This document shows positions 2,376 to 35,900 of a stretch of 64,000 nt of DNA, piece by piece (position 1 is the first letter of the stretch; each line of letters opens with the position of its first letter). The notes beneath the pieces are model-generated. The model searched no databases. It was not told the DNA's origin and saw only the letters and a program-made list of their open reading frames with translations. The position numbers and the translations under genes were made by a program. Source of the stretch: Bugula neritina (lineage: Eukaryota > Animalia > Bryozoa); assembly GCA_964035545.1 (NCBI GenBank), contig OZ037771.1, forward strand, positions 7,659,190 to 7,723,189. Reading direction: 5' to 3'.

Positions 2376-2899
2376 AATATTCAACATGACATACAAACCT
2401 TTGAAGTGTTGATGAAGAGAGACTTGATACTCTGATTAGTAGTAGGAACTAGTGTCAACTTGGTAAGATCTTCTGAAGTGGAGGTAGTATCTTCTCCTTC
2501 ATCCGAAACATCACTCAGTACATCATCAGTACCAACAGTATGAGTAGCAGCTCCACTGTGTCCAATATTATCTACATGTACAGGAAACATCACATAAACA
2601 GCTCACAGAAATGTAATGAAACCAGCAACCTACAGGAACAACTTCAACTGTCAATAACAAACATGGAGAATCAGAAAGGAAGAAAGTTATTTCTAATCAA
2701 TTCACTAGAAGTGAGTTTAATTCATGATACCCGGTGGCTTGAAGTTGGTCTTCACAAAATCACTCAGTTTCTGCAGCTCATCTCCAGAAAGCTGGAAAGC
2801 TGCAATATAAGTATGAAATATGGAGGTTGCTATTACGTGGACAGTACATCGTTATCTAAATAAGTTATAAATAACCTGCCAAAAGATAATCATACTAAC

Positions 2900-4824: not shown

Positions 4825-7345
4825 CTACCAAGTAAGTATACAGTATAACTTTAGTATTATTCTATATCAAATGTATTATGCTTAAAAGTAAAACTTGATT
4901 AAATACATAATAGTTAAGTATCCAACATAGCCTGAGAGATAAATAGTGTTTGACAGCACAACTGTTGTAAATGACTAGAACACAGGCCAAACTGAAAATA
5001 TAGACTATAATGATTGTTTGACTTAACAGTACAACCATTACAGTGAAAACATCGAGTATTGATTCAAAATTTGCAAATTTTATTACATTTCAAAACTTTG
5101 GATCTACTATAATACAATTGCAACATATGCAAAGTGTATTATTGCAAAATTATTACAGCCATACGTAAAAGTTTGACACCTTCATACACTTTTTGCAGCA
5201 TTGATAAATGGCTATACAGGACTTTCAATCTCCTATTATTTCAAAAAATTTGAAGTAATGCCAAACTGTTGCATATGGTCTTGTATGTTGTCTACTAATC
5301 TAACTAAATATATTTAAATAATTTTGAATAGATAAACTACATTTGCTCTAAGGAGCTTGCAAGCTGAAATAAATGTTCAAGTGTTGTTTACCCATTTAGG
5401 CTCATTTTTGCCTCCACACCATTGTACAATCAAGGCAAAGTACTGTATTGTGAATAAATATTTACAAAGTTTCAACCTGGGAACAAGCATTGGGCAACTT
5501 GAAATGTAACTGTACTACAGACTGAGTAAGCAGTAATGACATAATATACCTCACAAATCTACTATTTCTCTAAACTCAAACTTCACTTCTATATGGTGAG
5601 TGGTGGAAGACAAAATTTTAGTAGACAGCAGCTATCAAACTAAGAAGTACTGAAAGAAAGAAGCAATTGGGTTTGGTTTTGCAGCATTACAGGAAACTGG
5701 GGAGTGATTTATGGAATGCTATGACATTGGTGATTTCATACTTCAAATTGGTTTATGAAAATTACTACTCCATGGCAAGACTAAATTCATGCTGCCAGCT
5801 GCGTGGAGATTATGCAGAAGAAAGTAACTTTAGAGAAAGTAGAAAAAAACGTACTTTCTACCATACTTTCCTAGTAAAAGAGAGAAAATGCAAGTACTAG
5901 AGTGGCCCATGCAAAAGGCCAAAAGAATATTTTTATAGACAGTACAAAGAAGAGTAGCTGAGATAAAACCAACTGACATGGTCAATTTAGCTAGAACTGT
6001 CATCAATTCATGGGACAGGATGTGAGATAAACCACAAAATCAGCTGTGCTAGTGGAGAATATGTCAGCCTACTGCCTAGCAGTCATTGGTGCTAATAGTT
6101 ACTCACTCACACTGAAACACTGATATGTTATGTGCAACAATCTTTTCACACACAAAAACATCTCATTGTACAATCTTCTTCATTTTGCTAACCAACTAAA
6201 GAGAAAATTTCAAATCCTACATAAATATGTTTCAGTGCAAAAATTGATGGCAAAAAGCTTTTTAGCATTTTTCTATTGATAAGCTTATGCTATACAATAA
6301 ATAACAATGATCTAGAGTTGTAGCTCAGCCAATAAGTTGCATTTCATATATATATTTAAATATTTAAATATGTTTACGTAATAGAAGACAATATATAACT
6401 AACATAACTCACCTGTCTGGTAATGTATGTAAGTCACAGAACCGTAGACGTAACACTGTAAGTGACTTCATCTTTGGTATCACCTCAGGTAATGTTCCTA
6501 ACTCATTAAGAGACACAACTAATGTGTGTAGATGTGTGATGTGAGAGAGACTGTAATATACATACAATATACCATGACTATAATTATACAAGTTACAGGA
6601 ATATTATGTTAAACATACTGTGAGTTTATTCTAAACTGTTGCTTTGTAAGTATGGATTGCCAGTTAATTGTGTGCAGTAAGGATAGCCAAAAGAGAATAG
6701 GCAGTTTCAACATGTGGCAAACATATAGAAAGAGTCCTGGTTGCGCAATGCTGACATCCTGTAGTTTGTAATGGAAAGTAAAAAGTATTCAAAAGATGGA
6801 AAACCTCTAGGTGTGGTGACGATGAAGAGAAGGGAAAGATCACAGAGAAAGTATACGGAGAGAAGAAAAAACAGACGACAAATAAAATTGTAACAGCCAA
6901 AGAGAAGGCATATGGGACAGTCTATGAATACCTACAAGAGATCGAAGCAAAGAACCTATACACTTATATACCTATAAAAACCTATATATACCTAGATACA
7001 AGTTGGCCAAAACAAGAAAAAGACGATTATTGGATATAAATAGAATGAAATTGTGACTATAATCCATCAGAATGGTGACAGCATAAATGAGAATGTCGAG
7101 ACACATCTTTAGGATAATTTATGAGGAGCATATGGAAAATGATGTGATTAGATAACAGGTTGGAGTGACATGAATGTCTATAAACATGAGGAAAAACGTC
7201 TGCAGTGGTATTGCCATGTTTGCAGCAAAGATGATGATATTAGCTTCAACTCCAATGGATTAGAATCAATGGTATAATGGATATGAAGAATCTGACAAAT
7301 TGAAACATACAATATAATCTAACAAGAAATGAGGGTGGTCTAGGC

Positions 7346-8996
7346 CAGTGGCTCCCAACCTTTTTCCTACTATTCCCCCATTTAATAAATGTTGACTACT
7401 GTATTAATTCCCCCCCCTTTCGTAAAGCAAAAAAAGTTTCATGACTGACATAATGATAATATAGGATACAATACAATATTGTTTGTTCTATTAAAATATA
7501 ATTATAATAGTAGTTATATTATCGTTCTTATTATGTTATGCATGTATAGAACAAGGAGCAGTTCAATTTATAATGATTCTTTTGTGCCAGCTTGCATAAG
7601 TCTGCATTGCTGTTTTTGGCTATGCCCATCTTAATTCACTCTGCAGATTAGGGCAGTTTCTTTTCTCTTTGAATTAATGGGAATCCTATCTCACTTGGAA
7701 AGATGGCGCTGGGTGGCACCAAAATTCTACTTTGTCAGCTATGTGTGGGTAGAGTTTGCTTAAAACCCAAAATGATTTTAGGTGAAAATGGCACAAATGG
7801 AGAAGTAGGTAAGACTGGCACACTGATGGTAAACTTTCCCAAACCCCCACTCCAGCCATCACAATTGAACCCCAAACCAAAACCTCCAAATTGTATTCAA
7901 ACCCAAAATCCTCAACTCAAATCCCACCCCTGAACCCCAATATTGAAAATGTGCTATTTTTACACACTTTTTAATTTTTGCCATTATTACCTGTGCCTTT
8001 TATACCAGACACCATCCACAATACATCAATTAAAGAAGATTTCAAATCAACCTTCATTGCTGAATTGTAAACCAACTCAATGAAATCCTCTTGTAATTCT
8101 TCTGAATTCTTTTAACAGAACGTTGCAATAGATCACATGTCAAGCTAAGAATCTAGCTCTTTCTTTTTGAGAGGTAGCTCAGAAAAATATTGTTAAAACT
8201 CCAATAAAAGTTCAGAGAGATCCGCAGAAGTTTTTTGGAGAAAGAACCTGGAACAAGTGGTGTTCGGTAAAAATGGCACAGGTGGTAGTGGCACAGGTAG
8301 TAGTGGCGCAGGTAGTAGTGAAACAAATGGAAAATTGGGTAAAAATGGCACATTTTCAATATTAAAGTTGAAGATTTGGGGTTGGGGGTTCAAGATGAAG
8401 GGTTTCGGGTTCAGCATGGGGGTTTGAGAAAATTTAACACCAGTGGGCCAGTTTTACTTAAAGTCAAAACAGGTTCTTTTCCTAAAATAGTTTATGGAGT
8501 GTGGGGAAAGACACCATATTTTTGATAGGACGCCACAACTTTAGTGTAACTTTGAAAACATTGATGCTGCAAGGCAGAGCAATGATAAGATTATTGCACT
8601 CCTGTATTTTTAGGTTCAGATTATTTAGTGTAGCAAATATAGTCACTAGGTATGATACTTGTATTATGTATGTATGGTAATTTATAGAGATTAGCTTGCT
8701 TAAAGTTGGCCTATTGGTTTTTGCAAACTTTTTGACATCGATTCAAAGTAGTACAGAGAACAATGAGGGTAGAGTAATTAATAAACACATTCATGTTGAA
8801 GTAAACTGAGATTGCAGAATATAGCTTGGTTAAATAGATAAACTACGAGGAGAGTTTATAGGTATGCATGTACATGTAACATGCAAGAGCTCAAAAAAGC
8901 CTTCAATAAACTGCGTGAATTTCTTAAAATCTAAATCCCCCCAAAAAGCCCAAACTCCCCTCTAGGAGAGAATTCCCTCCAGGCTGGAAACCACTG
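7346..8996. mobile_element. Non-autonomous hAT (Charlie/Buster-like) element with nested MITE-like pieces
   Basis: TIRs CAGTGGCTCCCAACCT / AGGCTGGAAACCACTG; 8-bp TSD GTCTAGGC on both sides. Confidence 0.85.
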
Positions 8997-9984
8997 GTCT
9001 AGGCAAAAAGGGTGGGAGGTTTGTTTAAGAATAATATCCACTTTATTACTGGAGAGTTGGTATGCTGGGACTACTATTATCATTTCTGTTGTACTCTATT
9101 ATATATGTACATAGAGTTAGAACACAGAGAGAATGTAATATACATACAACTTTAGTGATTAGAGTTTAGACCAAAGTAAATATGGGAAGAAAGTGCTTTT
9201 TAAGAGATTAGATGATTCAGTGTAACAAATTGCTAAATCAATGCTAAAACAATTTTCCATTTGAGAATAATATTCACTTTATTACTAGATAGTTGGTATG
9301 CTGGGACTACTAGTATCAGTTCTGTTATACTTTATTATATGTTTACATAATAGTAGAACATATATAACTAATATAACTCACCTGTCTGGTAATGTATGTA
9401 AGTCACATAACTGTAGATGTAACTCTGTAAGTGACTCCATCTTTGGTATCACCTCAGGTGATGTTCCTAACTTATTACGAGACACATCTAATGTGTGTAG
9501 ATGTGTGAGTTGAGAGAGACTGTAATATACATACAATAAACCATGACTATAATTATACAAGTTACAGGAATATTATATGGCAAATATGCAGTGAATATAA
9601 TTTATTATTGCCTTGTAATATAAATTGGGTAAGTTATTTGCATTTAAGAATTATATTTACTTTATTACTAGAGAGTTGGTATGCTGGGACTACTAGTATC
9701 AGTCATATTATACTTTATTATATATTTACATAATAGTAGACAATATATAACTAATATATCTCACCTGTCAGGTAATGTATGTAAGTCACAGTTGCGTAGA
9801 CGTAACTCTGTAAGTGACTCCATCTTTGGTATCACCTCAGGTAATGTTCCTAACTCATTACCAGACACATCTAATGTGTGTAGATGTGTGAGTTGAGAGA
9901 GACTGTAATATACATACAATATACCTCGACTAAAATTATACAAGTTACAGGAATATTATGTTAAACATACTTTGAGGTTATATA

Positions 9985-10880
9985 AGGTGAAGAACAAAAA
10001 TAAGGACTGAGAAAAACACAGCTTTCTGCCTGAGACTTGGAACTTGGAACTATAATGACCCTCCTAGCTGTTCCAAACTTCAAGCTTCTCAGCCACTGCC
10101 AATGGGCCATGCAATTTGCAGATGATGTAATGCTGTGCAATGGATAGGCAAAGAGGGTGATAGGTTAGAAGAACAGAGGAAAGAAAATTAGAAGAAGCTG
10201 GACTAAAGCTGAGCAGAACCAAGACTGAGTACATGCTACCAGTGAGACTAGATAACAAGGAGAAGAAATACTATGACTGAGATAACTACAGTGCTCTGCC
10301 TGAGACTAGTGCTTTCAAATGCCTTGAAACTCTAATAATCAGAATGGTGGGTTGTGGCCTTGAAGTAGCTAGGAGGATTAGAGTGGCTTGGGACAAGTGG
10401 AAGGATCTCTCAGAAGTGCTGTGTGATAAGAAGGTATCAACTAAACATACAGTACTTCTGTTTAGAATATCCATTCTGTATGGTAATGAAACCTGGTCAG
10501 TTACTCATGGGATGGAAGAAAGGATGAAGACAGCAGAAATGATACACAATTTCGGGATAACTTACGAGGAGCACATTGAACATGTGATTAGATAACAGGC
10601 TGAGGTGAAACGAATACCTACATACATGAAAAAAAATGTCTGCAGTGGTATTTGCATATTTGCAAAAAAGAAATGATGAGGATATTAACCTCAATTATAA
10701 TGTATAAAAATCAATGGTATATGGAGATATTAAAAATCTGACAAATGGGAACATACTATAAAATATATCAAGAAGTATTGGAGCCTTAAGCAAGAAGAAG
10801 TCCACAGCCGAGTGTAATTGAGCTGGGAGATTGCAGAACGGCTACCTTGCAGGACTATAGTCAGTTAGGTGAGAAAGGTG
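9985..10880 (+). mobile_element. Decayed RTE-type LINE fragment in LRR intron (related pieces about 6660-7310, 11555-12130, 34725-35320, 62365-63010)
   Basis: GLKLSRTKTEYM, RRIRVAWDKWKDLSEVLCDKK, ILYGNETW motifs of the RTE RT C-terminus. Confidence 0.7.
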
Positions 10881-13800
10881 AAAAGTTGTATTTAATATTA
10901 TACTAATCTCTACAGTTTATGTAAAAGCAGTGAACATGTTATGACTCACCTGTCTGGTAATGTATGTAAGTCACAGTCCATTAGATGTAACTCTGCAAGT
11001 GACTCCATCTTTGGTATCACCTCAGGTAATGTTCCAAACTTATTACCAGACACAACTAATGTGTGTAGATGTGTGAGTTGGGAGAGACTGTAATATACAT
11101 ACAACAAACCATGACTATAATTATACAAGTTACAGAAATATTATATGGCAGATATGCAGTGAATATAAATTATTATTGCCTTGTTAATATGAATTGGGTA
11201 AGTTATTTGCATTTGAGTATTATATTCATTTTATTACTGGAGAGTGAGTATGCTGGGACTACTAGTATCAGTTATATTATACTTTATTATATGTTTACAT
11301 AATGGTAGACAATATATAACTAATATATTTCACCTGTCAGGTAATGTATGTAAGTCACAGCCCATTAGATGTAACTTTGTAAGTGACTCCATCTTTGGTA
11401 TCACCTCAGGTAATGTTCCCAACTTATTATAAGACACATATAATGTGTGTAGATGTGTGAGTTGAGAGAGACTGTAATATACATACAATATACCATGACT
11501 ATAATTATACAAGTTACAGGAACATTATGTTAAACATACTATGAGGTTATATAAGGCAAAGAACATAAATAAGGACTGAGAAAAACACAGCTATCTGCCT
11601 GAAACTTGGAACTATAATGACCCTAGTTGTTCCCAACTTCAAGCTTCTCGAGCCACTGCCAATGGGCCATGCAATTTGCAGATGATGAAATGCTGTGCAA
11701 TGGATAGGCAAATAGAGTGATAGGTTAGAAGAACAGAGAAAAAGAAAATTAGAAGATACTGGACTAAAGCTGAGCAGAACCAAGACTGAGTACATGCTAC
11801 CAGTGAGAATAGATAACAAGGAGAAGAAATACTATGTCTGTACTTCTGTTTAGAATATCCATTCTGCATGGTAATGAAACCTGGTCAGTTACTCATGGGA
11901 TGGAAGACGGGATGAAGACATTAGAAATGAGACACCTAGTTTATGAGGAGCACATTGAACATGACGTGATTAGATAACAGACTGAGGTGAAACGAATATC
12001 TACAGACATGAGAAGAGACCTGCAACAGTATGGACATGTTTGCAGCAAAGAAGATGATATTAGCCTCAACTCCAATGCATAAGAATCAATGGTAAATAGA
12101 GATAAGGAAGAATCAGACTAATGGAAACATACAATATAATCTAACAAGAAATGAGGGTGGTCTAAGCTAAAAAGGTGGGAGGTTTGTTGATGAATTGTAT
12201 CCACTTTACCATTAAAGAGTTGGTATGCTGGAACTACTAGTACCAGTTCTATTCTACTCTATTACATGTTTACATAATAGTAGACTATATATAACTAATA
12301 TATCTCACCTGTCTGGTAATGTATGTAAGTCACAGCCCCATAGACGTAACTTTGTAAGTGACTCCATCTTTGGTATCACCTCAGGTAATGTTCCTAACTT
12401 ATTAAAAGACACATCTAATGTGTGTAGATGTGTGAGTTGAGAGAGACTGTAATATACATACATTAAAAACCATGACTATAGTTATCCAAGTTGTAGAAAT
12501 ATTATATTAAACATGCAGTGACCTTTTATTATTTCTGCTCTGCAAGTATGAATTGTGTCAGTTATTTGTGTTTAGGAATTCAATTTATAATTAGAGAGTT
12601 GGTATGCTAGTATCAGTTTTATTATACATATAATACATATAATTAGAATACAGAGAGAATACATACAAAATTAGCAATTAGACCAAAGTAAGTATGAAAA
12701 GACCATGCTTTTTAAGAGATTAGATGATTCAGTGTAACAAATTGCTAAATCAACAGCAGTTGTAACAATTTTCCTGTAAAGAGAATATTGAAGATGGGTT
12801 TTACTCTGTATGACCAGGTTTTGCTGCCAAGGCAGCCACCTGAGAATTACTGATTACAGAAGGAGAGTAAAAAAACTGGAGACAAAACAAGAGAAGATAA
12901 ATCTCTGTAGTTACAATTCACTTAACTTGACTCTGGTGCAAGTGAATTCTGATGCAGTATAAAACTGGCCATAGGTGTGATAGTAGCTGTAAGGCAGGCA
13001 ATAACAGGTAGGCCTAAGTAATGAAAAGTCCAACAACTACTTTGAGATAATGAGAATAAAGTATTCACAACCCTGGACTAAGTATAAAGTGATTATAAAA
13101 GCTGGAGATACAATTGAGATAATGCTGATAGATAGGAAGGTAGATCTTATGTCAGAGTGATTCTAGATTATTACTCATCTGTATATATAAACTATAGCTG
13201 TGTTCAGAACATATTAAATATAGTTGATTGTTTTACTCCGTATTTCATTACATCTAAAAATATAGAACTTTATCTCACAATTTTAGCAACTCAAACAACT
13301 TCTAGAGCACTGATAATACACTAGAAGGAACGGAGATAAAACTAATAGCAGTGAATTTACTTTGAAGAAAAGGAAACAAACCTAAGGCTACAAGTTGTGC
13401 AGGTAAAATTATATTTGATTTGTGATTTCCTTAATGAATATACAACTATCTATTTTTCTACTGGCAGAATAAATATTAAAGTTATCCCCACATGCAAGTA
13501 ATCAGCTTTGATGTGTGAGTCACCAGAAGTCATGGTTGACCTCTTCCCCAGCAGCTTCAGCTCAAACTAATATAATTCTATTCAAGTTCTATACTTTTTA
13601 AATTCAATTCTTTATGGGTCTTTATGAATTTCTTTTTAGGGGTTTGGTTGAACATAATTTAGTTTGCACTTTTTCTCATCAAGCACACAGACTTTTCCAA
13701 AATTCACCCTTTTTTGCACCCACAGCTATCATTTAAGGAAAACAGAATGACTACTCAGGTGCAGTAGGGATACGAAGGAATATTGCTGACATGCCATACA

Positions 13801-16624: not shown

Positions 16625-16860
16625 AAAGTGAAACTGAATACTTTTCTTCGAGATAAAACTGCAATGTATGACACTTACATTTTCACTTGACAAATCTTGT
16701 TAAATCCTCAGTTTTGTAGTAACATTCTGGTTTGAATTGTAGTTAGTATAGCGGTGGGACAGCTGAATTAGCTTCCTCATCCTCCTATTATCCACTGACC
16801 TGATTTCAAGGACTGCCGGAAAACGCCTACAATAACAGGAAACAGGTTAGCGACGGCTTA
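16625..16860 (-). promoter_or_regulatory. Probable promoter / non-coding first exon of copy A (homologue about 39426-39670)
   Basis: Conserved GTAAGT donor at 16673-16678 (B 39478-39483), acceptor just upstream of the ATG, CCGGAA (ETS-like) and AAAGTGAAACTGAA (IRF-like) motifs. Confidence 0.45.
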
Positions 16861-21118: not shown

Positions 21119-23991
21119 CTACCACTCTCCATAGAATAAAGGAAACAAGTAAATCTTCCTTCTACCAGTGAGAGTATTTATAACCACAGGAGTCTGTGTC
21201 ACGTAAACAGTTGGATTTCTTTCTCTCCTTTTACCAGATATTTTCCTCACTCTGTGCTTCACCTTTAAATATTTTAAAACTAAATATATGCTGTTGTTTG
21301 CAGACATCAAAATTTTTATTTTTTTAAAATATACTAGATGGAAAACTAGAACAAATGTTATTCAAATAAAATATCAAGAAATTCTGTTCTAACAGAGATA
21401 ATAGAAAGGTATCAAATCTGAAAAAACATAATATAATGTGCAGGAAGCTTATAAAAAGTATTATATATGAAATAGAGAACTCAGTAAAGCTCATTCACTC
21501 TGCATCTTATACTATGACTATATCAAACTGCGACTATACTATACTATTACATGACGATGTTATACTATGACTATACTATACTATGACTATACAATAACAT
21601 GACTATAATATTACACTATGACTATATTATACTATGACTATACTACACTATGACTATAATATACTATGACTATACTATGACTATACTATACTATAACTAT
21701 ATTATTCTATGACTATATTATACTATTGTAGTAATTTGTGCAATTACTGAGCGTGAGTTATTTACTTGCGTATAGTTAGCTGGTTATTCTGCTATCAATT
21801 ACTAGGGTAGCTGTCGAGTACTTATATTTATTATCCACAATAAAGCATAAAACAAACATCACATCAAATTATCCTATACAACAGTCAACTACTAACACAT
21901 GTTACTACTTTAAGCCTCCGCTTACAACAACGTGATATAATGTTAATAACCCGGGAAGTGTCACGTGAATCGGAAGCATATCTTCCGGAGCTGCTAATTG
22001 GTTGCTACATAATGGTCTAAGTATTCCAAAAGTAGGGAGAGGACGATTCCCGTATTTGTACTTTGCACTACTCACTACACCATGACTATACTATACTATG
22101 ACTATACTATACTATGACTATATTGTACTATGACTATATTATACTATGACTATAATATACTATGACTATATTATACTATGGCTACATATTATATTATGAC
22201 TATATTATACTATGACTATACTATAACTAGTCACTACACCTATACTACTGTGACTACACCACACTGACTAATATGAAAACAGCCTCCTCTGAATAGGAAT
22301 TGATGTCACAGGAAGTTACTCACAATATCAAATAAGTCAGCAAGATCACGATGACAGCCATGTCTGTGTAAAGTCCTGACAAGTGTTCTTATCAATAATG
22401 AGCCACCGTAATCAAACTTCATAGAAGCACTGTCTATTAAAATAACACAATGAGTTGAATAGTAAATATTACACAGTGTAAAGTAACAGTGAGTGACACT
22501 ATCCAGTAAAAACTGGTGAGAAATGCTAATTGAAAATTTGAAAATTGGGTTATTTCAGCAACGAAAGGTATATCTTGAGAAAGTCACATGACTGGTGGGT
22601 TTCAAAACTACTTGATGGTGATTGGGAGTTGTGGCCCATGGTTTAGGTGAAAAGGGATTAACCACACAGAATTGTTTGTAACTTAATCGTCTCACTTTAA
22701 ATTAAAAACATTCAGCTAGAGAAAATACTTAGCCGAGTATTTTTAGGCAGCAGAGTATAAACTGTACAGACTAGTGTATCACAGATTACATGAAAACTAG
22801 ATAACTGTAACTCACACACAAATGGTCTATGTACTCAGTTCAGGTTTATGAAAGGTCATGTGATTAGACAGCACACCACAGCTGCTACCTGCTCTTTTTA
22901 TTCTATTTGTTACTAATTTTCAATTGAATAATGGATTTGCGTTTAAAATTTTGGCCGATAACACCCTGAGCAAACTTTATTAATAAAATTATGACAATCC
23001 TAAAATGATGCAAGAAATATTCGTTTCTTTCGGTGGACAAAATTCTTACTTTCAAAGCATGAGTGAAGGATTAGAAGGTCGTCAACATCAAAGTTCCTCT
23101 GTCCAGTTGAAGTCTCAGCTTCCTGTTGATGAGTTTTGAGAGCAGAAAGTTCTGGTGAGGAGGAGTTGGTACTCTGTTGAATATTCTGCTCAGTTTGACT
23201 GACTGAGTTACCTGATTGATTAGTAACACATGTGATATACCAACCAGTATTCTATGTATATGTATGAAGACTAGAGTATCATATAATACAGTATTACAAT
23301 AGTATAATATATTCTTACTCGTATCATATCTACACTCACCAACTCTGCACGCCTGAATAACCACAACTTTAGGCTTGCCGGCCATGTTGGGAAAATTTGT
23401 AGAGTTAATGAGACTGTAGATCTGTGTTAGATAGACTGGCTGTGAGTCAACTCCATGAATCATTCCATTAGCTCCGTGTGCAAACAGAAACAGGAAGAAC
23501 ATACCATAAGTGTTATGAATCTCATCTCTTGTCTCTGATTGAATACACTGGAGTATCTCCTGTATATGAATATAACACAACACACACAATATACAAACTC
23601 AAGCAAGCATATTTGTCACATCTCGTACTAGCCTCTAGGAAGTTAGCTCCGTGAAACAAAAGTTAGCCTAAAAGCGAAGATTCTGCATTTCCCGAACTTG
23701 ATAACTGATTCAATAGACAAGTCTGCAGGCTATTATAACAGTGAAGTGAGACATTAACCACTATTAACTAGTCACACTACGTGATAAGAAAAGGGAGACA
23801 ACTACAAGTAAATAGAAATATACCTCAGCTGTGAGATCCTTCTGCTTCACAACCTCAAATCTCATCTTCCTGAACAGAGCAAATGTGTTGTCAACATCAT
23901 AACTAGAGCCAAGTCTCTGTCCTATATTTCTATACTTGTTGTTGTTTATAATCAGAGCTCTTCCTCTGAATGGACTCGTCATCTTGTATAT
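21119..23991 (-). CDS. Caspase exons, copy B (5 exons, complete p20+p10)
   Basis: p20 motifs plus p10 exons SASMKFDYGGSLLIRTLVRTLHRHGCHRDLADLFDI (22324-22433, absent from ORF track) and VKHRV...QTPVVINTLTGRRKIYLFP. Confidence 0.9.
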
Positions 23992-26900
23992 CTGTAGATA
24001 CAGACTATGTAATTAGTTTAGTACTTATTCATCTCATATTATAAGCAACTGAAGAATAATGAGTTAAAAATCATCCATGAGTAGACTAATATGGTTTCGG
24101 ACATATTGTGTGGCTTTAACACAGGTGCCAGCCTTAACAGTGCTGGGAAAATTGAAAGTACAACCTGGCAGTTTGTTCCATAGATTAGTGACCATCATTC
24201 ATACTTACCGTACCGTAGGCCGTAACAGCAAATATCAGCCATTTTTACAAATGTCTGAGCTTCCTGTATGGCATTGTGGTACGTTAGGATCAAGCGCTGC
24301 TTGATTCAAAAATGTTGCGGCGGCTTTCTATTGGACAGAAAAACTTTTGCGTCAACGCTCAAGGAGAGCCAAGGCTATACAGAGATAACAGAGAGGAGAG
24401 CCAAGGCTATAGAGAGACAATAGAGAAGAGAGCCAAGGCTATACAGAGATAACAGAAAAGAGAGCCAAGGCTATACAGAGATGACAGAGAGGAGAGCCAA
24501 GGCTATAGAATATTCAACATGACATACAAACCTCTGAAGTGTTGATGAAGAGAGACTTGATACTCTGATTAGTAGTAGGAACTAGTGTCAACTTGGTAAG
24601 ATCTTCTGAAGTGGAGGTAGTACCTTCTTCTTCGTCCGAAACATCACTCAGTACATCATCAGTACCAACAGTATGAGTAGCAGCTCCACTGTGTCCAATA
24701 TTATCTACATGTACAGGAAACATCACATAAACAGCTCACAGAAATGTAATGAAACCAGCAACCTACAGGAACAACTTCAACTGTCAATAACAAACATGGA
24801 GAATCAGAAAGGAAGAAAGTTATTCCTAATCAATTCACTAGAAGTAAGTTTAACTCAAGATACCTGGTGGCTTGTAGTTGGTCTTCACAAAGTCACTCAG
24901 TTTCTGCAGCTCATCTCCAGAAAGCTGAAAAACTGCAATATAAGTATGAATTATGGAGGTTGCTATTACTTGGACAGTACATCGCCATCTAAATATTCTA
25001 TAAATAACCCAACAGAAGACAATCATACTAACTTGGGTGTAAAAGACAAGCTGGGATATCTCTGTATTTTCCACATCTACCAGGTGATGAATCTGAAGTC
25101 ATGGGAAGGGATTCACCATACTTTGGAGGTCGACACCAGGGTGGGTTGATGAACCTCTTTGGTCGCTTTTCTCCAACCAATGGGCAGTGAGCACACAAGT
25201 TGATACAGGTAATTTTACTTGCTCCCCACCATAAGTTGAAGTACTTTACGGTTGAATGAACTGAAGTGGTCAACATCCTCCAAGCATTGCCTATCTGTCG
25301 ACAAGCAGACGTTACGGAGATACTGAGTTTACAAGATTTGTAGTCATGCAGCAACTGCAGGGTGTAAGCTTCGTCTCTCAGCTCCACTCCATTCTTTTTC
25401 ACAGCTTTTTCACTACAATCCTGGATATCATTGAGAAGTTTCACAGAAATCTGGTGGTAAACGTACTGAGGGGGAGTCAGGCCACCAAACAACATGTCTA
25501 CTGACAGCTTTACAGGTTGTCTCCTGGAGGCAGTCAAGTCGGTGAAATACTCCTGTGAGCAGTATGGCATAGTGTAACTTAGTTTCTGGGATGAATCTTT
25601 CATCTCGAATAACAACTGGAAAGATTGCAGCAATGCGACTGCCACCTTCATCTTGTCACTCGTGGTGAAGCTGGTCTCTGCTATCAGAAGATGCTGAAAC
25701 AGCTTCTCACCCATCCCGCCAGTTCGAACAAACTCTTGAGCCAAATTATTAAACTCTGTTTTATTTTCTGTCAACAGAATATCAAGTGAATCCTCTTCAA
25801 TCGCTGACCGTCGATTGCTCCACACTTCCTTCTCGTGAGTGAAGAATACGTGGAGCAGCTTTGTAACCACGGAGATGTCGTAGAATACCAGAGACTGCAA
25901 ACTCTCCCTATCCTGGTACCAAATGAGATGGCCGCTGTTATGCATGTATGACAGAATCACTCTCAGCTGGTCTTCACTTTCCAACTTGCATTCAGTGACA
26001 AGTTGAAGCACTTCTGGAAATGTCTTGTAACTTCCATGGAATGAGTTGAATGTTTGAGCAACTTTTCTCCACAGAGTAGGCACCTTCTTCACGACTAGTT
26101 TACTATCAGATATGATATGACTTCTCAGCTGATCAAACACCTCTTCATATTCATCACCCACAACATATATATCTTGTTCTTGAAACATCTCTTGGCACTG
26201 AAAAAGAAAAACTTGTGCAAAGGAGCTGGAATAATTCTCTTTAGAATTTTCTTCTAGTTGTATCAAATTGAATACACTTTTGGTGTGGAAAAAGAACAGC
26301 CTTTTTAGCTCTTCAAATCCATCTGCACTGTAAGCATCTCGGTGAGTGAAAACCAGTTTGGGTGCTCTGAGCCCGGGATTGGCCAGGTACAGATGTGAGA
26401 GCCAATCAAAATATGTGCATCGAACTGCTTCATTACCATTCACTTCTAAACAGAGCTCTTCAAACTCTTTTAGATTCACAACCACAATAGGAATACAGTT
26501 CTGTTTCAACGTGAACTGGTAGGTAGATTGGTATATTTTATTGCCACCAAAATCTATGAACTGAAGAACATTGTCACCAACCACTAACTTTTCCATATTG
26601 AAGACACGAGTTATTTCATCTTCCACTGCATCAGCCGCTCTATTGGTTAATTTCCTTTTGCCATCTGATCCCACCAGCGTTTTAGTCAGGCTGGTTTTGC
26701 CAGACAGCGATCTACCCACTAGAGCGACCGTAGCTTCAGAAACTTCTACATGACCACCAGAACTAAGATCGTTATAATACTGTCTGATAGCTGGTAGTCC
26801 GTCTACACACACAGCATAAGGTGGAGATGTGAGTGATACACACATGTAGCAGTACAGTTTAGTCAGATTAGGCATGTTGAGAAGTTGAGGAGTTAAAGAT

Positions 26901-29900
26901 GTCATCTGAGAGTTGAGTGACAAGTCTAAGACTTGGAGATTCTTGAGTTGACCAACACTACCAAGTAAGTATACAGTATAACTTTAGTATTATTCTATAT
27001 CAAATGTGTTATGTTTAAAAGTAAAACTTGATTGAATACATAATAGTTAGGTATCTAATATAGCCTGAGAGAGAAATAGTGTTTGACAGCACAACTGTTG
27101 CAAATGACTAGAACACAGGCCAAACTGAAAATATACCGATTACTTGACTTAACAGTAAAACTATTACAGTGAAAAAATAGAGTATTGAGTCACAATTTAC
27201 AAATTGTGTTACATGTAAAAACTTTGGATCTACAATAATACAATTGTAATATATGGAAATTGTATTATTGCAAAACTATTAAAGCCATGCGTAAAAGTTT
27301 TGACACCCTCATACATTTTTGCAGCTTTGAAAAATGGCTAAACAGGATGTTCAATCTCCTAATGTTTCAAACAATTTAAAGTAATGCCATAATGTTACAT
27401 ATGGTATTGTGTGTTGTTTTGTAATCTAACTAAACACATTTAAACAATTTCAAATAGATAAACTATATTTGCTCTTAGAAGTTCCTGATATGAAGTAAAT
27501 TTTCCTGTGTTGTTTACCCATTTAGGTTAATTTTTGCCTTCATACCATTGTACATTCAAGGCAAAATAGTGTATTGTGAATGAATATTTACAAAGTTTCA
27601 ATCTGGGAACAAACATTGCGCAACTTAAAATGAAACTGTATTACAGACTGAGTAAGCAGCAATGACATAATATACCTCACAATTCTACTATTTTCTAAAC
27701 TCAAACTTCACTTCATTATGATGAGTGGTGGAAGACAAAATTTTAGTAGACAGCAGTCATCAAACTAAGAAGTGTAATGTTTTGAATGTTAACTGCATGC
27801 ATTAGAGTTGTTTGTTATTACTGCATGAATCAGATGATTTTTGGCAACTGTATGATGTCATATTCTGCATGTATATAACATGAAGATTTACAAATAAATA
27901 GTTAGTTTTAGCTCTCAACGAAGTGTAGTCTCTACAGCATAAATATAATAACTGCAACTTAACACAACATAAAAAGAAGTACTAAAAGAAAGAAGTAATT
28001 AGGTTTGGTTTTGCAGCATTACAGAAAACTGGGGAGTGAGTTTTGGAATGTTATGACATTGGTGATTTCATACTTATAATTGGCTCATGAAAATTACTAC
28101 TCTATGGCAAGAACTGGTGAAATAAAAATTTCTGAAAGATAAATTCATGCTGCCAGCTTTGTGGAGATTATGCAGAAAAAAGCAACTTTAGAGAAAGTAT
28201 AAAAAATTTACTTTCTACCATACTTTCCTAGTAAAAGAGAGGAAGTTCAAGTACTTCAGTGGCCCATGCAAAAGTTAAAATAGATTTATAGACAATACAA
28301 AGAAAAGTAGCTGAGATAAAACCAACTGACATGGTCCATTTAGCTAGAACTGTCATCAATGCATGGTACAGGATGTGAGATAAACTACAAAATCAGCTGT
28401 GCTAGTGGAGAATATGTCAGCCTACTGCCTAGCAGTCATTGGTGCTAATAGTTACTCACTCACACTGAAACACTGACATGTTATGTGCAAGAATCTTTTC
28501 ACACACAGAAGACATCCCATTCTACAATCTTCTTCATTTTGCTAACCAAATAAAGAGAAAATTTCAATTCACGCATAATTATGTTTTAGTGCAAAATTTG
28601 ATGGTAAAGGGCTTTTTAGCACTTTTCTATCAATAATCTCGTGTTATACAGTTGAAAATTATCTAGAGTTGTAGCTCAGCCAATCAGTTCCATTATATAC
28701 ATATTCAAATATTTTTAGCATGTAAAATTTCAGAAATTGCAAATAAAGATGTAAACTTGTAAACAATTTGGGGGTGTCAAAACTTTTACTCGTGACTGTA
28801 TAATATATTGCAAGCTGCAATCAGATTTATTCAAACTTAGTAATCTCTATAGTTTATATAAAATAGATGATCATATATGATATCTTATATGTTTACATAA
28901 TAGTAAAACATATATAACTAATATAACTCACCTGTCTGATAATGTATGTAAGTGACAGTCCTCTAGACTTAACTGTGTAAGTGACTCCATCTTTGGTATC
29001 ACCTCAGGTAATGTTCCTAACTTATTACCAGACACAACTAATGTGTGTAGATGTGTGAGTTGGGAGAGACTGTAATATACATACAATATACCATGACTAT
29101 AATTATACAAGTTACAGGAATATTATATGGTAGATATGCGGTGACTCTAAATTATTATTGCCTTGCAGGTAAGAATTGTGTCAGTTATCTCTGTTTTAGT
29201 ATTATATCCACTTCATCACTAGAGAGTAGGTATGCTGGGACTTCTAGTATCACTTCTATTATACTTTATTATATGTTTACATAATAGTAGAACATATATA
29301 ACTAATATAACTCACCTGTCTGGTAATATATGTAAGTCACAGTACTGTAGAAATATCTCTGTAAGTGACTCCATCTTTGGTATTACCTCAGGTAATGTTC
29401 CTAACTTATTCTCAGACACATCTAATGTGTGTAGATGTGTGAGTTGGGAGAGACTGTAATATACATACAATATACCATGACTATAATTATACAAGTGACA
29501 GGTATCTTATATGATAGATATGCAGTGAGTCTCAATTATTATTGCTTTGTAACTTGTAAGTATGAATTGGGTAAGTTATTAGCATTTGAGTATTATATTC
29601 ACTTTATCACTAGAGAGTGGGTATGCTGGGACTACTAGTATTAATTTTATTCTACTTTATTATATATGTTTACATAATAGTAGACTATATATAACTAATA
29701 TAACTCACCTGTCAGGTAATGTGTGTAAGTAACAGTACTGTAGACGTAACTCTGTAAGTGACTCCATCTTTGGTATCATCTCAGGTAATGTTCCTAACTT
29801 ATTATAGGACACATTTAATGTGTGTAGATGTGTGAGTTGGGAGAGACTGTAATATACATACAATATACCATGACTATAATTATACAAGTTACAGGAATAT

Positions 29901-32900
29901 TATGTCAAACATGTTATGAGCTTTTATTATTTCTGCTCTGCAAGTATGAATTGTTTATAGTCTGGCAGAAAAACACCAATTTTTGACTTAGGTTCGCACC
30001 CCCGGATAAAGTTTTTTTCTCTCCTGATTATTCAAATATAGGGTCTAGGTAAATGTTTCCAGGTGGGTGTGGACTTCTTACCCTTGAGCATTTTGAGAAA
30101 TTCAAGATGGCCGCCAGGCACCAAATGATTTTTTCTAATTCAAATGTACCTACCCATTGGGGCTAAATTTAAGGTTCCAATGCTTTGAAATCTTTAGAAA
30201 TTAATATAATAAAGATGCATGTGCCTTTATCATATGCATTATTGAGTAATAGGCAAATGATACCCAAGGGTAACTAAGCTAAGCCTTAATCATTCATTTT
30301 TTCAAGTTTAACCTAGCCTTGCCGTGTTTATAATTTCCTTTTATCTCTGCATCAGTTTGTTCTAACTTCATAAAAGTTTACTATATGGTGTGATTTTATA
30401 TGCTGATTACAAGTATGTCCACCAAATAAAGCTGAAAGGAGTTCTGCAAACTTAAAATGCAACGTCATTGCCATATGAGTTGAATAGCAATTTATTTCCA
30501 ACTGGCATGCCTATCGAAAAGATTTGTTGAGCTGCCAACTTAATAGTTATTTTCAGTTTTAAAACTTTAGCTATGTTTTTTAAAGTTATAAAAAGGGGTC
30601 AAAAATTTTAATAACACAGCACCAAGGCTTCTTAACATAATTTAATTGCTTTATTATTGACACATCATTTATCTAAATATTGACATTTTTGCTTTCGAAA
30701 ACTATTTCTACAATCAGCCCATTTGACTTTTCCTCTAAAAGCATTTGCAACAGTTTTTTATAAATGAAAATGTATTTCATGCTGAGGGAAGTAATACATC
30801 TATTAGAACAGTGGTTCCCTACCTTTTTCATACCAATCCCCTTTCATTAACGTTTACTATTAATTTCTCCCCTTTTAATGACCTATGTTGGGTGCACTGG
30901 AACACTAATAGCTGAAAGTGGTTTGGTAGAAGTAGTTAATTCTACTTTTGGTTGTTTCTCCAAAATGCTAAATAGAAAAAGTTTCTCCAGAATGTACAAG
31001 GTTTGAGAATATTGGTGGGAGAACTGTTAAAGCTAGTCTTGATGAAAGTGTAATCACTAGCATGAAGGAGCTTGAAAAGATGTTGATTAAGATTGCAGAG
31101 AGCTCAAGAACAGCAAAACTGTGGGCCATGTGCTTTATTGGACCAATTTTTACCATCAACACCCACATCATATCTGTTAGAAAATGAGACTGGGCCTTAT
31201 ACCTAGCAATAGAAGAGGAAATGCACTATCTGCATAGCGTGGAGGTCATGCCACAAGATGTAAGGATTGAATTCGCGGCTGGTAACCACGCAATGCATCA
31301 TAAACGCGGCCAGCTCGACGGCATCTGGTCAGACATGACCATTGAGGTGACCTTTGTGAGATTTGGTCACAGCAAGGGGGAATCATTGGCATCACCACTA
31401 AATTTGAAACTCTCAAGGTGTGGGTGTACAGCACTTCTGCATGCAACAAAATATAGTATGGCCTCAGTGACATCAGGGATGAGTCTGAAATAAATGCTTT
31501 CACTACTCATAAGGATGAGATGCAATCAAGAATCCAATCTGATTCAAAGGACAGGGAGTCTGTCAAACGGAAGATTGAACTCTGCAGTGACCCACTAAAA
31601 GAATGATGCCACCCAGTTGCTCTTGTCAATATTGAAGCAGATAAGTGCAACTGAGATGAGGATGCTTAAAAAAATTTACAATATGAATTGGGAAGACCAT
31701 GTAACAAATGATAATATAAAGGAGGAGGCCAAAATAGAAGCTATCGCAATACACATGAGGAGAAGACCTCTTCAATAGTATGGACATGTGCGCAGAAGAG
31801 ATATGGAGGAAGATATTATAATGGTGGCTGAGATGAAGATACAGAGAAAGAGAAAGGGAGAGGGGGGAGGGGGCAAAAAAGGTTAACGGATACAGTGAAG
31901 GATGGCATACTGAAATGTGGCTTCTCAGATGAAGATGTTGACAATAGAATCAGATGACACTCTCTGATAGCACTTGGTGCCCTGCAAAACCGCTACTCAT
32001 CTTGGACAACGGCGTACTGGATGAGAAAGTCTGAGACAAAGCCCTATGATGAACAATTTGCTGCCTTCCCATGGTCTCTCAGGGGCAACAATGTAGAATA
32101 TTGGAAAGGGAGTCCAGTCATACTAAATGTCTTGGTAGAAGGAAAATGTGATTTGGTGACACTAGTGCTTTTTTCAGGATTACTATTCATACAAGCTACC
32201 AAGTTTATGCTATGTTGCTACAATTATGCAAAGTGCTCCTCCATGACATCTACAAGACAAAAGACTTGGGAAACCAAGGTCAGCAATGCTATTTGCGATG
32301 TGCCTTTAACTTATGTACTTTGCCTCCTACAGATGAAGCTATTGGACAATGTCACCAGAGCACACCTCCAGGTAGCCATATGAAACTGCGGCATTAAGCC
32401 CACTAGAACATTGGTAAGTGATAGGGAATCTAATAGAATCTCTTTTCCCAAAAGGATTATGAAATGATGTTGTGCTTACACCAGACAGTATTATGAAGTA
32501 GATCATGTTAGTTAATTTGGTGTACACTCGACGGCTCTAGCTTTTGGCGATTTTTTACAGTTTAGCTGCTATTGTATACAGATTTTTGCCTCAAACTATC
32601 AAAATTTTAACAAATAAAACTGAATAATTAAGGTTTTTCCAATTATGCATGATTTTCTATGTCTATTCCTAATTTATTATTACATTGAGATATTATATAG
32701 GCCGTGATGATTCACAAATTTATATTCAGCTCGTATGACAATGACGCCGCGCTTAAATGTTGCAGGACCTCTTCCCAGTCATTTTGTTATGCATAGATAG
32801 AATCAGCAAATTCTATTACCCCATATAGTAAGTTTCATGAATTTTGAGCAAACTTTAAAATGTTTGATCATAATCTGCTGATGTGTACTAAATAAAGTAA

Positions 32901-35900
32901 AATGGCCCAAATTCATTAAATGCTCCTGTGGAAGCCAACAATCATGTTAAACAACAAGATATGGCTATTCTAGTACATCTATCCCATGCACAGAGTTCTG
33001 CCCTTGTGAAGCAGTAACAGGAGTGTGCTGCAATGAACTAACATTTCTAACAAATACTAATGTTAAAAAAAAATGAAAAAGGTGTTTAATATGAACATGA
33101 GTGAAAGTTTGTCGCATTTGTACGATTATATATACGTTCAATTTTAACTTTAGCTGAGCAATATGTTGCATCTGTATCTTTTTTTCACTTTTTATTTCCT
33201 GGCAATAAGTAATGTTTTTTTTCTATATCTGCCCAGTGCCCAAACAGTCATTCAAAAACCTTGTATCATTTCTCTGCACCATATGTGATGTTTTATTGAA
33301 GCAATTCCGATTTTTGAGCTGAAAAACATGTCTCTTAGCTCTTTACTTTGATTTCTTTTTTACTGGCATTGCACATATTCATTCTAAAAATGCACATCTA
33401 TTTTAATCATCAAAAAAATTTTGTTTTTGCAACATAATATAGACTTTATGCCGACTAGATTACGATTTTTTCATAATTGGCGGCCATCTTGGATTTCTCG
33501 AAATGCTCAAGGGTGGCAGGTCCACACCCACCTGGAAACATCTACCTGGACCCTCAAGATAAATAATCAAAAGAGAAAAAAACTTTATCCGAGATTGCGA
33601 ACCTAACCCCCAGTTCTGCCAGACTATTAAGTTATTAGTGCTTATGAATTCAATTTAAAACTGGAGAGTTGGTATGCTGAGATTACTAGTATCAGTTTTA
33701 TTATACTTTATTATATGTTTACATAATAGTAGAACATATATAACTAAGATATCTCACATGTCTGGTAATGTATGTAAGTGACAGTCCTCTAGACTTAACT
33801 CTGTAAGTGACTCCATCTTTGGTATCACCTCAGGTAATGTTTCTAACTTATTCTCAGAAACATCTAATGTGTGTAGATGTGTGAGTTGGGAGAGACTGTA
33901 ATATATATACGATATACCATGACTATAATTATACAAGTTACAGGAATGGTATACGGCAGATATGCAGTGAATATAAATTATTATTGCCTTGTAAGTATGA
34001 ATTGGGTACATTATTTGCATTTGAGTATTATATCCACTATATTATTAGAGAGTTGGTATGCTGGGACTACTAGTAATAATTTTATCATACTTTATTATAT
34101 GTTTACATAATAGTAGAACATATATAACTAATATAACTCACCTGTCAGGTAATGTGTGTAAGTAACAGTACTGTAAATGTAACTCTGTAAGTGACTCCAT
34201 CTTTGGTATCACCTCAGGTAATGTTCCTAACATATTATAAGACACATCTAATGTGTGTAGATGTGTGAGTTGAGAGAGACTGTAATATACATACAATATA
34301 CCATGACCATAAATATACAAGTTACAGCAATGGTATGCAGTGGGTTTATAACATTATAGCTTTTCAAGTATGAGATGTGGAACTTATTTTTGTTTTTGTT
34401 CAATTTATTACTGTAAAGTTGGTATGCTGGGACTACCAGTTTCAGTTATATTATACTTTATTATATGTTTACATTATAGTAGATTATATATAACTAATAT
34501 GTCTCACCTGTCTGGTAATGTATGTAAGTCACATTCCCGTAGATTTAACTCTGTAAGTGACTCCATCTTTGGTATCACCTCAGGTAATGTTCCTAACTTA
34601 CTAAAAGACACATCTAATGTGTGTAAATGTGTGAGTTGGGAGAGACTGTAATATACATACAATATACCATGACTATAATTATACAAGTTACAGAAATATT
34701 ACGTTAAACATACTTTGAGGTTATATAAGGTGAAGAACAAAAACAAGGACCAAGAAAAACACAGCTAACTGCCTGAGACTTGGAACTTGGAACTAGAATG
34801 ACCCTCCTAGCTGTTCCAAACTTCAAGCTTCTCGGCCACTGCCAATGGGCCATGCAATTTGCAGATGATGTAATGCTGTGCAATGGATAGGCAAATAGAG
34901 TGATAGGTTAGAAGAACAGAGAAAAGAAAATTAGAAGATGCTGGACTAAAGCTGGGCAGAATCAAGACCGAGTACATGCTACCAGTGAGAATAGATAACA
35001 AGGAGAAGAAGAAATACTATGACTGAGATAACTACAGTGCTCTGCCTGAGACTAGTGCTTTCAAATGTCTTGCAACTATAATAATCAGAATGGTGGGTTG
35101 TGGCACTGAAGTAGCTAGGAGGATTGGAGTGACTTGGGACAAGTGGAAGGATCTCTCAGAAGTGCTGTGCGATAAGAAGGTATCAACTAAACATACAGTA
35201 CTTCTGTTTAGAATATCCATTCTGTATGGTAATGAAACCTGGTCAGTTACTCATGGGATGGAAGACGGGATGAAGACAGTAGAAATGATACACAATTTTG
35301 GGATAACTTACGAGGAGTTGATGAATTGTATCCACCATATTACTGGAGAGTTGGTATGCTGGGACTACTAGTATCAGTTCTATTCTACTCTATTATATAT
35401 GTACATAGAATTAGAACACAGAGGGAATGTAGTATACTTACATACAAAATTAGCAATTAGACCAAAGTAAATATGGGAAGAAAGTGCTTTTTAAGAGATT
35501 AGATGATTCAGTGTAACAAATTGCTAAATCAAAAGAAGTTGTAACAATTTTCCTGTAAAGAGAATGTTGAAGATGGGTTTTGCTCTGCATGGCCCGACTT
35601 TGCTGCCAAGGTACCCACCTGAGAATTACTGAATACAGAAGGAGAGTAAAAAAGTTGGACAAAAAAAGTAGATAAATCTCTGTAGCTTCAATTCACTTAA
35701 ACTTGACTCTGATGCAAGTAAATTATGATGCAGTATAAAACTGGCCATAGGTGTGATAGTAGCTGTAAGGCAGGCAATAACAGGTAGGCCTAACTACAAC
35801 TACTTTGAGATAATGAGAATAAAGTGTTCACATCCCTGGACTAAGTATAAAGTGATTATAAAAGCTGGAGATACAATTGAGATAATGCTGATAGGTAGGA

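Follow-up and report, generated by a model that had tools for sequence, protein, structure and literature searches.

Phase-symmetric LRR cassette exons with strong evidence of diversifying selection in tandem LRR-Roc-COR-caspase genes of the bryozoan Bugula neritina

The stretch of DNA analysed here, hereafter the window, comprises 64,000 nucleotides of contig C7 (OZ037771.1) of the bryozoan Bugula neritina (C7:7659190-7723189) and carries three tandem paralogous genes on the minus strand, designated A (at the low coordinates), B, and C, which combine arrays of leucine-rich repeats (LRRs) with Roc and COR domains and a predicted caspase. Within the LRR arrays lie uniform cassette exons of 138 bp, and we consider it probable that these are the spliced exons of a receptor-type LRR family that evolves in the germline by birth and death and is under diversifying selection. 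Positions given below are those of the window unless prefixed by C7, and the genome-wide searches covered the 216-Mb assembly.

Cassettes were sought in the window by pattern search, blastn, and tblastn, which yielded exactly 13 cassette exons of 138 bp, on the minus strand only. A previous reading of the sequence alone (the sequence-only reading) had described 13 such exons at 6413-34645; the number stands, but 12 of the 13 lie inside that range and the remaining one, the “RG” variant, lies outside it at 62115-62252, and the exons do not form a single array but are split among the three genes, of which gene A has a premature stop. Six cassettes belong to gene A, six to gene B, and one to gene C, which has four in total, with three more just past the window end at C7:7724284, 7724667, and 7725833. 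An AG acceptor, a GT donor, and a single open frame are present in all 13 window cassettes. The cassette exons align without gaps at 87-100% identity, and each encodes 45 residues that make up a pair of non-identical 23-residue LRRs. The unit of about 384 bp that had been proposed for exon plus intron describes the sub-clusters, where start-to-start spacing is 366-393 bp, but not the rest of the arrays, where it is 975-4049 bp; the other cassette-to-cassette introns, of 0.8-3.9 kb, contain transposon debris.

All 13 exons are phase 2-2, the first base (T) finishing a codon that is opened by the last AG (once AT) of the preceding exon. The sequence-only reading had taken this symmetry to make the exons frame-neutral in any number or order, and the constant exons on either side share it: exon 2 ends in a phase-2 donor and the large Roc-COR exon begins with a phase-2 acceptor, so that any number or order of cassettes, even none, keeps the frame. 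Across the 13 window cassettes, codon 11 encodes D, V, N, or Y, codon 14 encodes G, F, Y, E, R, or L, codon 34 encodes R, N, H, S, or F, and codons 36-37 encode RG, RE, QY, ED, WG, MG, MD, RN, QL, or RF; the residues that the earlier reading had listed all match these translations, and the variable residues do occupy the x positions of LxxLxLxxN/C, as it had stated.

Genome-wide, at least 40 cassettes of this type are present in nine genes, which form two clusters on contig C7 (minus strand, 7.589-7.726 Mb; plus strand, 5.039-5.105 Mb) and hold 2, 3, 4, 4, 5, 5, 5, 6, and 6 cassettes; all 40 are flanked by AG and GT and open, with no stop or frameshift. Selection was estimated from these 40 cassettes, using the 12 x codons of the two LxxLxLxx[N/C]xL motifs, which were fixed before counting (codons 8, 9, 11, 13, 14, 16, 31, 32, 34, 36, 37, and 39). 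Averaged over all pairs of cassettes by the Nei-Gojobori method, nonsynonymous (dN) and synonymous (dS) divergence were 0.087 and 0.077 for the whole exon (dN/dS 1.12), 0.309 and 0.067 for the 12 x codons (dN/dS 4.6), and 0.015 and 0.080 for the 33 framework codons (dN/dS 0.19), and the mean dS of 0.077 bears out the impression that silent differences are few. Site models were fitted with purpose-written GY94/F3x4 code on a maximum-likelihood tree of the exon together with 100-nt flanks. M0 gave a dN/dS (ω) of 2.0, and the log-likelihood (lnL) rose from -1444.4 under M1a to -1265.9 under M2a (2ΔlnL = 357, 2 degrees of freedom), with M2a assigning ω = 28 to 11% of sites and a posterior above 0.99 to codons 11, 14, 34, 36, and 37 only. 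Sankoff parsimony on the same tree counted 163 nonsynonymous and 11 synonymous changes in the x codons and 22 and 34, respectively, in the framework (odds ratio 23, Fisher p = 1e-16). The sequence-only reading had named a site-wise analysis of dN/dS as one check of its claim, and both the pairwise and the M2a versus M1a comparison put dN/dS at x positions far above 1.

Nucleotide diversity tells the same codons apart. At the first and second positions of codons 14, 34, 36, and 37 it reaches 0.53-0.74, which is near saturation, and at those of codon 11 it is lower (0.23-0.38); the third positions of the five variable codons range from 0.00 to 0.30, versus 0.23-0.74 at the first and second. Fourfold sites have a diversity of 0.09, introns 0.19-0.25, and the 30 splice-proximal intron bases 0.05. 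Given that the variable sites outpace every one of these neutral proxies, relaxed constraint cannot explain them. Across these nine genes, the Roc-COR exon shows a dN of 0.045 and a dS of 0.119 (ω 0.38). The LRRs at the start of that exon (26857-26957 on the minus strand, and the paralogous sites) are strictly orthologous between paralogs, and by eye they vary at the motif positions of the cassettes, following L[Y/E/N/K/D]C[Y/R/L/F/P/N][M/D/G/W/K]C (for example LYCYMC, LECRDC, LNCLGC, and LKCNDC).

In LRR proteins the β-strand of each repeat lines the concave face, and the x side chains face the solvent. The cassette consensus matches the 23-residue LRR class (LxxLxxLxLxxNxLxxLPxxIxx), and its best solved relatives are Leptospira LIC11098 (PDB 4u08, E 5e-25) followed by SHOC2 (PDB 7t7a, E 1e-15), with 4u06 also among the best PDB matches. 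Within the LRR motif, the variable codons fall at positions 5 and 8 of the first repeat and at positions 5, 7, and 8 of the second. The 45-residue cassette was modelled with AlphaFold2 from the 40-sequence alignment, and the model, which is of low confidence (pLDDT 59), has strands at residues 9-13 and 32-36; codons 11, 34, and 36 lie within the modelled strands and codons 14 and 37 directly after them, with conserved L/V residues alternating with the variable ones. This placement would agree with the binding-face position that the earlier reading had assigned to the variable sites.

Transcript evidence came from Logan assembled contigs of three RNA-type runs from three studies (X1, X3, and X4) together with a DNA run (X14). 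Cassette-cassette joints with CT..AC ends, that is, GT..AG on the gene strand, occur exactly at the predicted borders in all three RNA-type runs, and the DNA run has no such spliced joints, which shows that splicing follows the predicted exon borders. The clearest joint, 34279>34508, connects cassettes 1 and 2 of gene B and was found in X1, X3, and X4 and not in X14, and loose ends in X3 and X4 join the 3′ end of exon 2 to a cassette start. Other joints resemble skipping, namely 33895>34508 (three runs, passing over cassette B2) and 29069>34508 (one run, passing over four cassettes), each with a shorter side of 24-25 nt, and a 255-nt loose end in X4 that runs from the end of exon 2 to a B2-like acceptor and would skip B1. 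The last 25 nt of B1 are present, with at most one mismatch, in 33 of the 40 cassettes, and the first 31 nt of the acceptors in 34-36 of the 40; because the joint sequence is common to 33-36 cassettes, these joints are not assignable to a gene or a cassette pair. A search of protein collections with one cassette, aimed at spliced two-cassette fragments, returned only intron read-throughs and one NCBI gene model.

Genes A, B, and C are related by a segmental duplication of about 22 kb, and their nearest named proteins are Bugula neritina hypothetical proteins at 89-93% identity. Each gene has the same order, with the cassette array upstream, a large LRR-Roc-COR exon, and Peptidase_C14 exons downstream, all on the minus strand. 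In gene B, a predicted exon 1 (37715..37775) starts with the ATG at 37775 and encodes MATNSVTSSEDEV..., without a signal-peptide-like hydrophobic start; exon 2 (36753..36987) encodes the N-terminal region and the first LRR and ends in a phase-2 donor (TA|). The large exon of gene B (25031..26957, with a phase-2 acceptor at 26957 and an approximate 3′ end) encodes the terminal LRRs, Roc with its P-loop (GRSLSGKTS), COR-A, and COR-B, and the caspase exons (23030..23994) encode Peptidase_C14 with His (FAHGANG) and Cys (QACRVG) motifs, more 3′ exons following to about 21119. The corresponding Roc-COR exon of gene C (54704..56653) is open, and that of gene A (2898..4850) has an in-frame TGA at about 3093-3095, within COR-B, where the paralogs have TGG (NFW*GASK versus NLWWGASK in gene B).

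Pfam Roc is above its curated cut-off in A, B, and C (E 1e-7 to 9.5e-7); COR-A (E 6e-9 to 2.5e-7) exceeds its cut-off in gene B only, and COR-B (E 3.5e-4, in gene C) falls under its own. Roc is directly followed by COR, as in ROCO proteins, and the nucleotide-binding motifs GRSLSGKTS, IDFGG, and FTHRD were read by eye in the translations of all three genes. The Peptidase_C14 match has an E of 6e-13, and all three genes encode the catalytic His-Cys motifs FAHGANG and QACRVG of the predicted caspase. Roc, COR, and caspase are linked in one NCBI gene model for Bugula neritina. The coupling of the cassettes to a death protease, which had been proposed from the letters, is thereby supported at the level of gene models, with the Roc, COR, and caspase domains encoded in the same genes. 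Where caspases usually have the active-site pentapeptide QACRG, each of the three paralogs has QACRV(G) (23308-23330 on the minus strand), and the exon after the active-site exon encodes an Asp-rich linker (FDVDD). In A, B, and C, the acidic-linker exon contains or adjoins a 32-bp tandem repeat (AACAGAGAGGAGAGCCAAGGCTATACAGAGAT), which lies at an equivalent site downstream of the Roc-COR exon in each gene (2097-2374, 24362-24507, and 53842-54180, with 8.8, 4.6, and 10.7 copies). Arrays of a 16-bp satellite (ACTATGACTATACTAT-like), of up to 36 copies, lie at 21508-22247, at the 3′ end of gene B, and at 42526-43504, between genes B and C.

The individual cassettes, all on the minus strand, can be described by their residues at codons 11 and 14 and, after the slash, at codons 34, 36, and 37. 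Gene B begins with cassette 1 at 34508..34645 (two LRRs; D,F / N,R,E), followed by cassette 2 at 34142..34279 (D,Y / H,Q,Y) and cassette 3 at 33758..33895 (D,E / S,E,D), which ends in AT rather than AG and so places Ile instead of Ser at the junction codon; cassettes 4 and 5 are at 29709..29846 (N,Y / R,Q,Y) and 29316..29453 (D,E / F,Q,Y), and cassette 6 at 28932..29069 (V,G / S,E,D), the final one ahead of the Roc-COR exon, clusters with the last cassettes of other paralogs. The cassettes of gene A are, in order, at 12309..12446 (D,F / R,W,G), 11334..11471 (Y,Y / H,M,G), 10950..11087 (V,G / H,M,D), 9765..9902 (D,G / R,R,N), 9382..9519 (D,R / H,Q,L), and, as the last, 6413..6550 (V,L / R,R,F), and the window cassette of gene C, also the last of its array, has V,G / R,R,G.

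These cassettes are not grouped by gene: the last cassettes of different genes cluster together, internal ones are intermixed, and the identity between A and B units (87-92%) is similar to that within genes. A reverse-transcriptase fragment in an intron of gene A (10092..10671 on the minus strand), with other copies at 11652-12019 and 34835-35303, was co-duplicated with two cassettes, and its being copied along with two-cassette blocks of about 1.56 kb indicates tandem duplication at the DNA level. The codon 34/36/37 triplets SED, HQF, HEH, YMK, and HKD recur with differing pairs at codons 11 and 14, which fits recombination between cassette halves or repeated substitution. The family probably evolves by birth and death with unequal crossing-over, and all of the diversity documented here is germline. 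Other mobile elements are also present in the window. Between genes B and C, a Ty3/gypsy-type long terminal repeat retrotransposon (44224-49619 on the plus strand) has open gag (289 aa) and pol (1524 aa) and a G+C content of about 55%, against about 35% in its surroundings. A non-LTR retrotransposon (58249-61886 on the plus strand) lies antisense in the gene C intron between the last cassette and the Roc-COR exon, with an ORF1 of 239 aa (Baculo_FP-like domains) and an ORF2 of 953 aa (endonuclease and reverse transcriptase by eye). Two plus-strand open reading frames in the 3.9-kb intron between B3 and B4 (29847-33757) have no Pfam match; this intron is very deeply covered in all four runs, DNA and RNA-type, which indicates dispersed repeats.

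A homologue of exon 2 is present in eight of the nine genes, and that of the ninth probably lies beyond the DNA covered. Candidate copies of the Roc-COR exon number at least 132 genome-wide, and all 70 that were scored have an E below 1e-120. In the assembly GCA_010799875.2, two loci match every paralog equally well, at about 90% identity, and no ortholog is assignable. A cassette search of 1.84 billion representative proteins found only generic LRR proteins at up to 51% identity and a 52-residue fragment. A distant LRR-Roc-COR protein from ENA (P0028, 1271 aa), whose Roc-COR part is 24% identical, has a design like that of the Bugula cassettes: it contains about 13 near-identical units of 48 residues with two LRRs each, and most of the variation among the units falls at LDL[RG/SF/RR/KG]N and at L[S/H/Y/N]L[CN/CD/VQ/WN/SD]C.

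Several points weigh against reading the cassettes as a functional, diversifying receptor repertoire. The placement of the variable residues on the concave face is a prediction that draws mainly on established knowledge of LRR structure, the cassette model being poor, and a role of these genes in pathogen recognition or allorecognition is one that we infer by analogy. The Roc-COR exon has a stop codon in two of the nine close paralogs, gene A (TGA) and C7:7606547-7608436 (TAA), so that the repertoire, including the six cassettes of gene A, may be partly decaying; the two genes may be pseudogenes or variant alleles, or may yield shortened LRR-Roc-COR proteins that lack the caspase. Synonymous exon diversity (0.06-0.09) and the diversity of the 30 splice-proximal bases are two to four times below that of the remaining introns across the 40 cassettes, and this deficit slightly raises dN/dS; it could result from exon-centred gene conversion or from constraint on splicing signals. 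The cassettes are also mosaic, with all four gametes at 123 of 465 informative site pairs, and mosaicism can inflate the likelihood ratio of the site models. A neighbour-incompatibility (PHI-like) permutation test was non-significant (p = 0.74, with 26% of site pairs incompatible), about 400 nt being too short to inform it. The size of the effect and the agreement of tree-free with tree-based estimates nevertheless make the conclusion robust, and there is strong support for diversifying selection at the residues of the predicted binding face.

The same evidence bears on other explanations of the cassettes. If they served as a scaffold for endogenous partners, in the manner of SHOC2, their variation might reflect relaxed constraint or decay in an amplified and partly pseudogenised cluster; the stops in two of nine Roc-COR exons and the rank of SHOC2 as best solved relative after the Leptospira proteins would suit this, but relaxed constraint yields a dN/dS of up to 1, not of 4-28, and would not be limited to five motif positions, and both the framework dN/dS of 0.19 and the lack of any stop or frameshift in the cassettes speak for constraint, so that we hold this account to be improbable. 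A local mutational hotspot or an artefact of repeat alignment is less credible still, to the point of being very improbable. Synonymous change per site is about twofold higher in the five variable codons (2.8 versus 1.4), albeit on just 2.7 synonymous sites, whereas their third positions are much less diverse than the first and second, and gapless exons of such high identity leave little for misalignment to act on; we rejected the hotspot on these codon-position patterns. Somatic assembly of DNA or gene conversion as in lamprey variable lymphocyte receptors (VLRs), with cassettes acting as donors that are copied into an expressed gene, might be suspected from the near-identical framework with variable inserts and from the mosaic relationships. 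Yet all 40 cassettes have their splice sites in place and belong to complete genes, in which they are flanked by exon 2 and the Roc-COR exon, no incomplete germline gene and no bank of splice-site-less cassettes was seen, and the single joint in the DNA run (29294>34273, with a 24-nt side) is out of register and lacks support elsewhere. VLR-like assembly was accordingly rejected on gene anatomy and is, in our judgement, also very improbable.

Combinatorial alternative splicing, in which cells would skip or choose cassettes and make many isoforms from each gene, differs from these in that it would add to the germline diversity. Phase symmetry is complete, exon 2 and the Roc-COR exon included, there is precedent in the brown-algal (Ectocarpus) ROCO genes and, in another form, in Dscam, and the joints 33895>34508 and 29069>34508 and the loose end from exon 2 to a B2-like cassette would mean skipping if taken at face value. 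The shorter sides of these joints, however, consist of 24-25 nt of sequence common to most cassettes, and the same contigs could be obtained if neighbouring cassettes were spliced normally in any one of nine or more paralogs; we consider this explanation unlikely. It is more doubtful again that the phase-2 arrays are used combinatorially throughout the family, with regulated skipping or choice yielding several isoforms from each of more than 100 LRR-Roc-COR-caspase genes; if this were true, a colonial animal that lacks adaptive immunity would recognise pathogens or allogeneic neighbours with a very large set of proteins in which sensor, switch, and executioner form one piece.

For the germline birth-and-death family that we favour, the following mechanism can be proposed. 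The predicted protein is cytosolic and begins with a short N-terminal region and a single LRR; the cassettes follow (2-6 in the nine paralogs), then two or three terminal LRRs, and finally the Roc GTPase, COR, and the caspase. The cassette framework and the splice-proximal intron are kept near-identical while positive selection pushes five residues per cassette apart. Tandem gene duplication, together with the gain and loss of cassette blocks by unequal crossing-over, would generate the repertoire in the germline, phase-2 introns on all sides would make such gains and losses harmless to the frame, and point substitutions at the contact positions would then be selected. In the resulting protein, the variable concave face may bind a non-self or danger ligand, upon which the Roc-COR switch would change state or oligomerise and the fused caspase would be activated.

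The closest known system is the LRR-ROCO family of brown algae, a parallel to Ectocarpus that the sequence-only reading had drawn and that proves close on comparison. In brown algae, clustered LRR-ROCO genes have 72-bp phase-2 exons of one LRR each and are reported to be alternatively spliced (Zambounis et al. 2012, PMC3341825; Teng et al. 2024, PMC11378527), with four positively selected concave sites per 24-residue repeat and a proposed role as immune receptors (PMC3341825; PMC11378527). The Bugula genes share the LRR-Roc-COR order, the tandem, uniform, phase-symmetric (phase 2) LRR exons holding whole repeats, and the clustered, expanded family, as well as positive selection at the predicted concave β-strand, here at five sites per two-repeat cassette, and the proposal of an immune-receptor role. 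They differ in that the exon is not a 72-bp single-LRR exon but a 138-bp cassette of two non-identical 23-residue LRRs, in being found in an animal, and in the C-terminal caspase, and the likeness is most likely convergent. Prokaryotic AP-GTPase (Roc)-COR proteins, which have rapidly evolving N-terminal LRRs and variable C-terminal effectors and have been read as conflict systems (Kaur et al. 2021, PMC8195603), similarly join a variable LRR sensor, a Roc-COR switch, and a C-terminal effector in one polypeptide; unlike them, the Bugula genes are intron-rich, build their LRR array from exons, and have an animal-type caspase as effector.

Among animals, the mollusc Aplysia and the placozoan Trichoplax have Roc-COR proteins that carry TIR, Death, or CARD domains (PMC9334734; PMC4104024). 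The Bugula proteins share the Roc-COR tandem with animal ROCO proteins such as MFHAS1/MASL1, LRRK1/2, and DAPK1, and the N-terminal LRR with MFHAS1 and LRRK, but neither a fused caspase nor an LRR array of cassette exons with diversifying selection is present in any of the animal ROCO proteins described. Lamprey and hagfish VLRs likewise vary concave residues on a constant LRR framework through modular cassettes; they are assembled somatically from splice-site-less cassettes into an incomplete gene, whereas in Bugula the germline genes are complete and the cassettes are among their spliced exons. In plants, the LRR domains of NLRs and receptor-like proteins also show diversifying selection at the solvent-exposed xxLxLxx positions and tandem birth-and-death clusters, but NLRs have a STAND NTPase where the Bugula genes have a Roc-COR GTPase switch and one cassette per exon. 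SHOC2 and the Leptospira LIC proteins share the 23-residue repeat but are single-copy scaffolds or bacterial surface proteins rather than a hypervariable cassette family. We found no description of a Roc-COR-caspase fusion or of an LRR cassette system in animals or bryozoans in the literature library searched, itself incomplete, and we regard the Bugula locus as a new animal variant of a known LRR-ROCO-type system, with the two-repeat cassette and the fused caspase as its distinctive features.

Bryozoans are colonial animals that fuse with or reject their neighbours and host specific symbionts, and to our knowledge the molecules by which they do so are essentially uncharacterised. The genes described here form a large, tandemly amplified family whose arms-race signature falls exactly on the predicted ligand-binding face, and their architecture makes the gain, loss, and reordering of binding modules frame-neutral while placing a GTPase switch and a caspase in the same predicted polypeptide. 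They provide an animal counterpart of the brown-algal LRR-ROCO proteins and of the bacterial LRR-Roc-COR-effector conflict proteins, and this comparison suggests that a sensor-switch-effector design may have been recruited repeatedly for defence. As such, they are concrete candidates for bryozoan immunity or allorecognition and for the control of a protease by Roc-COR.

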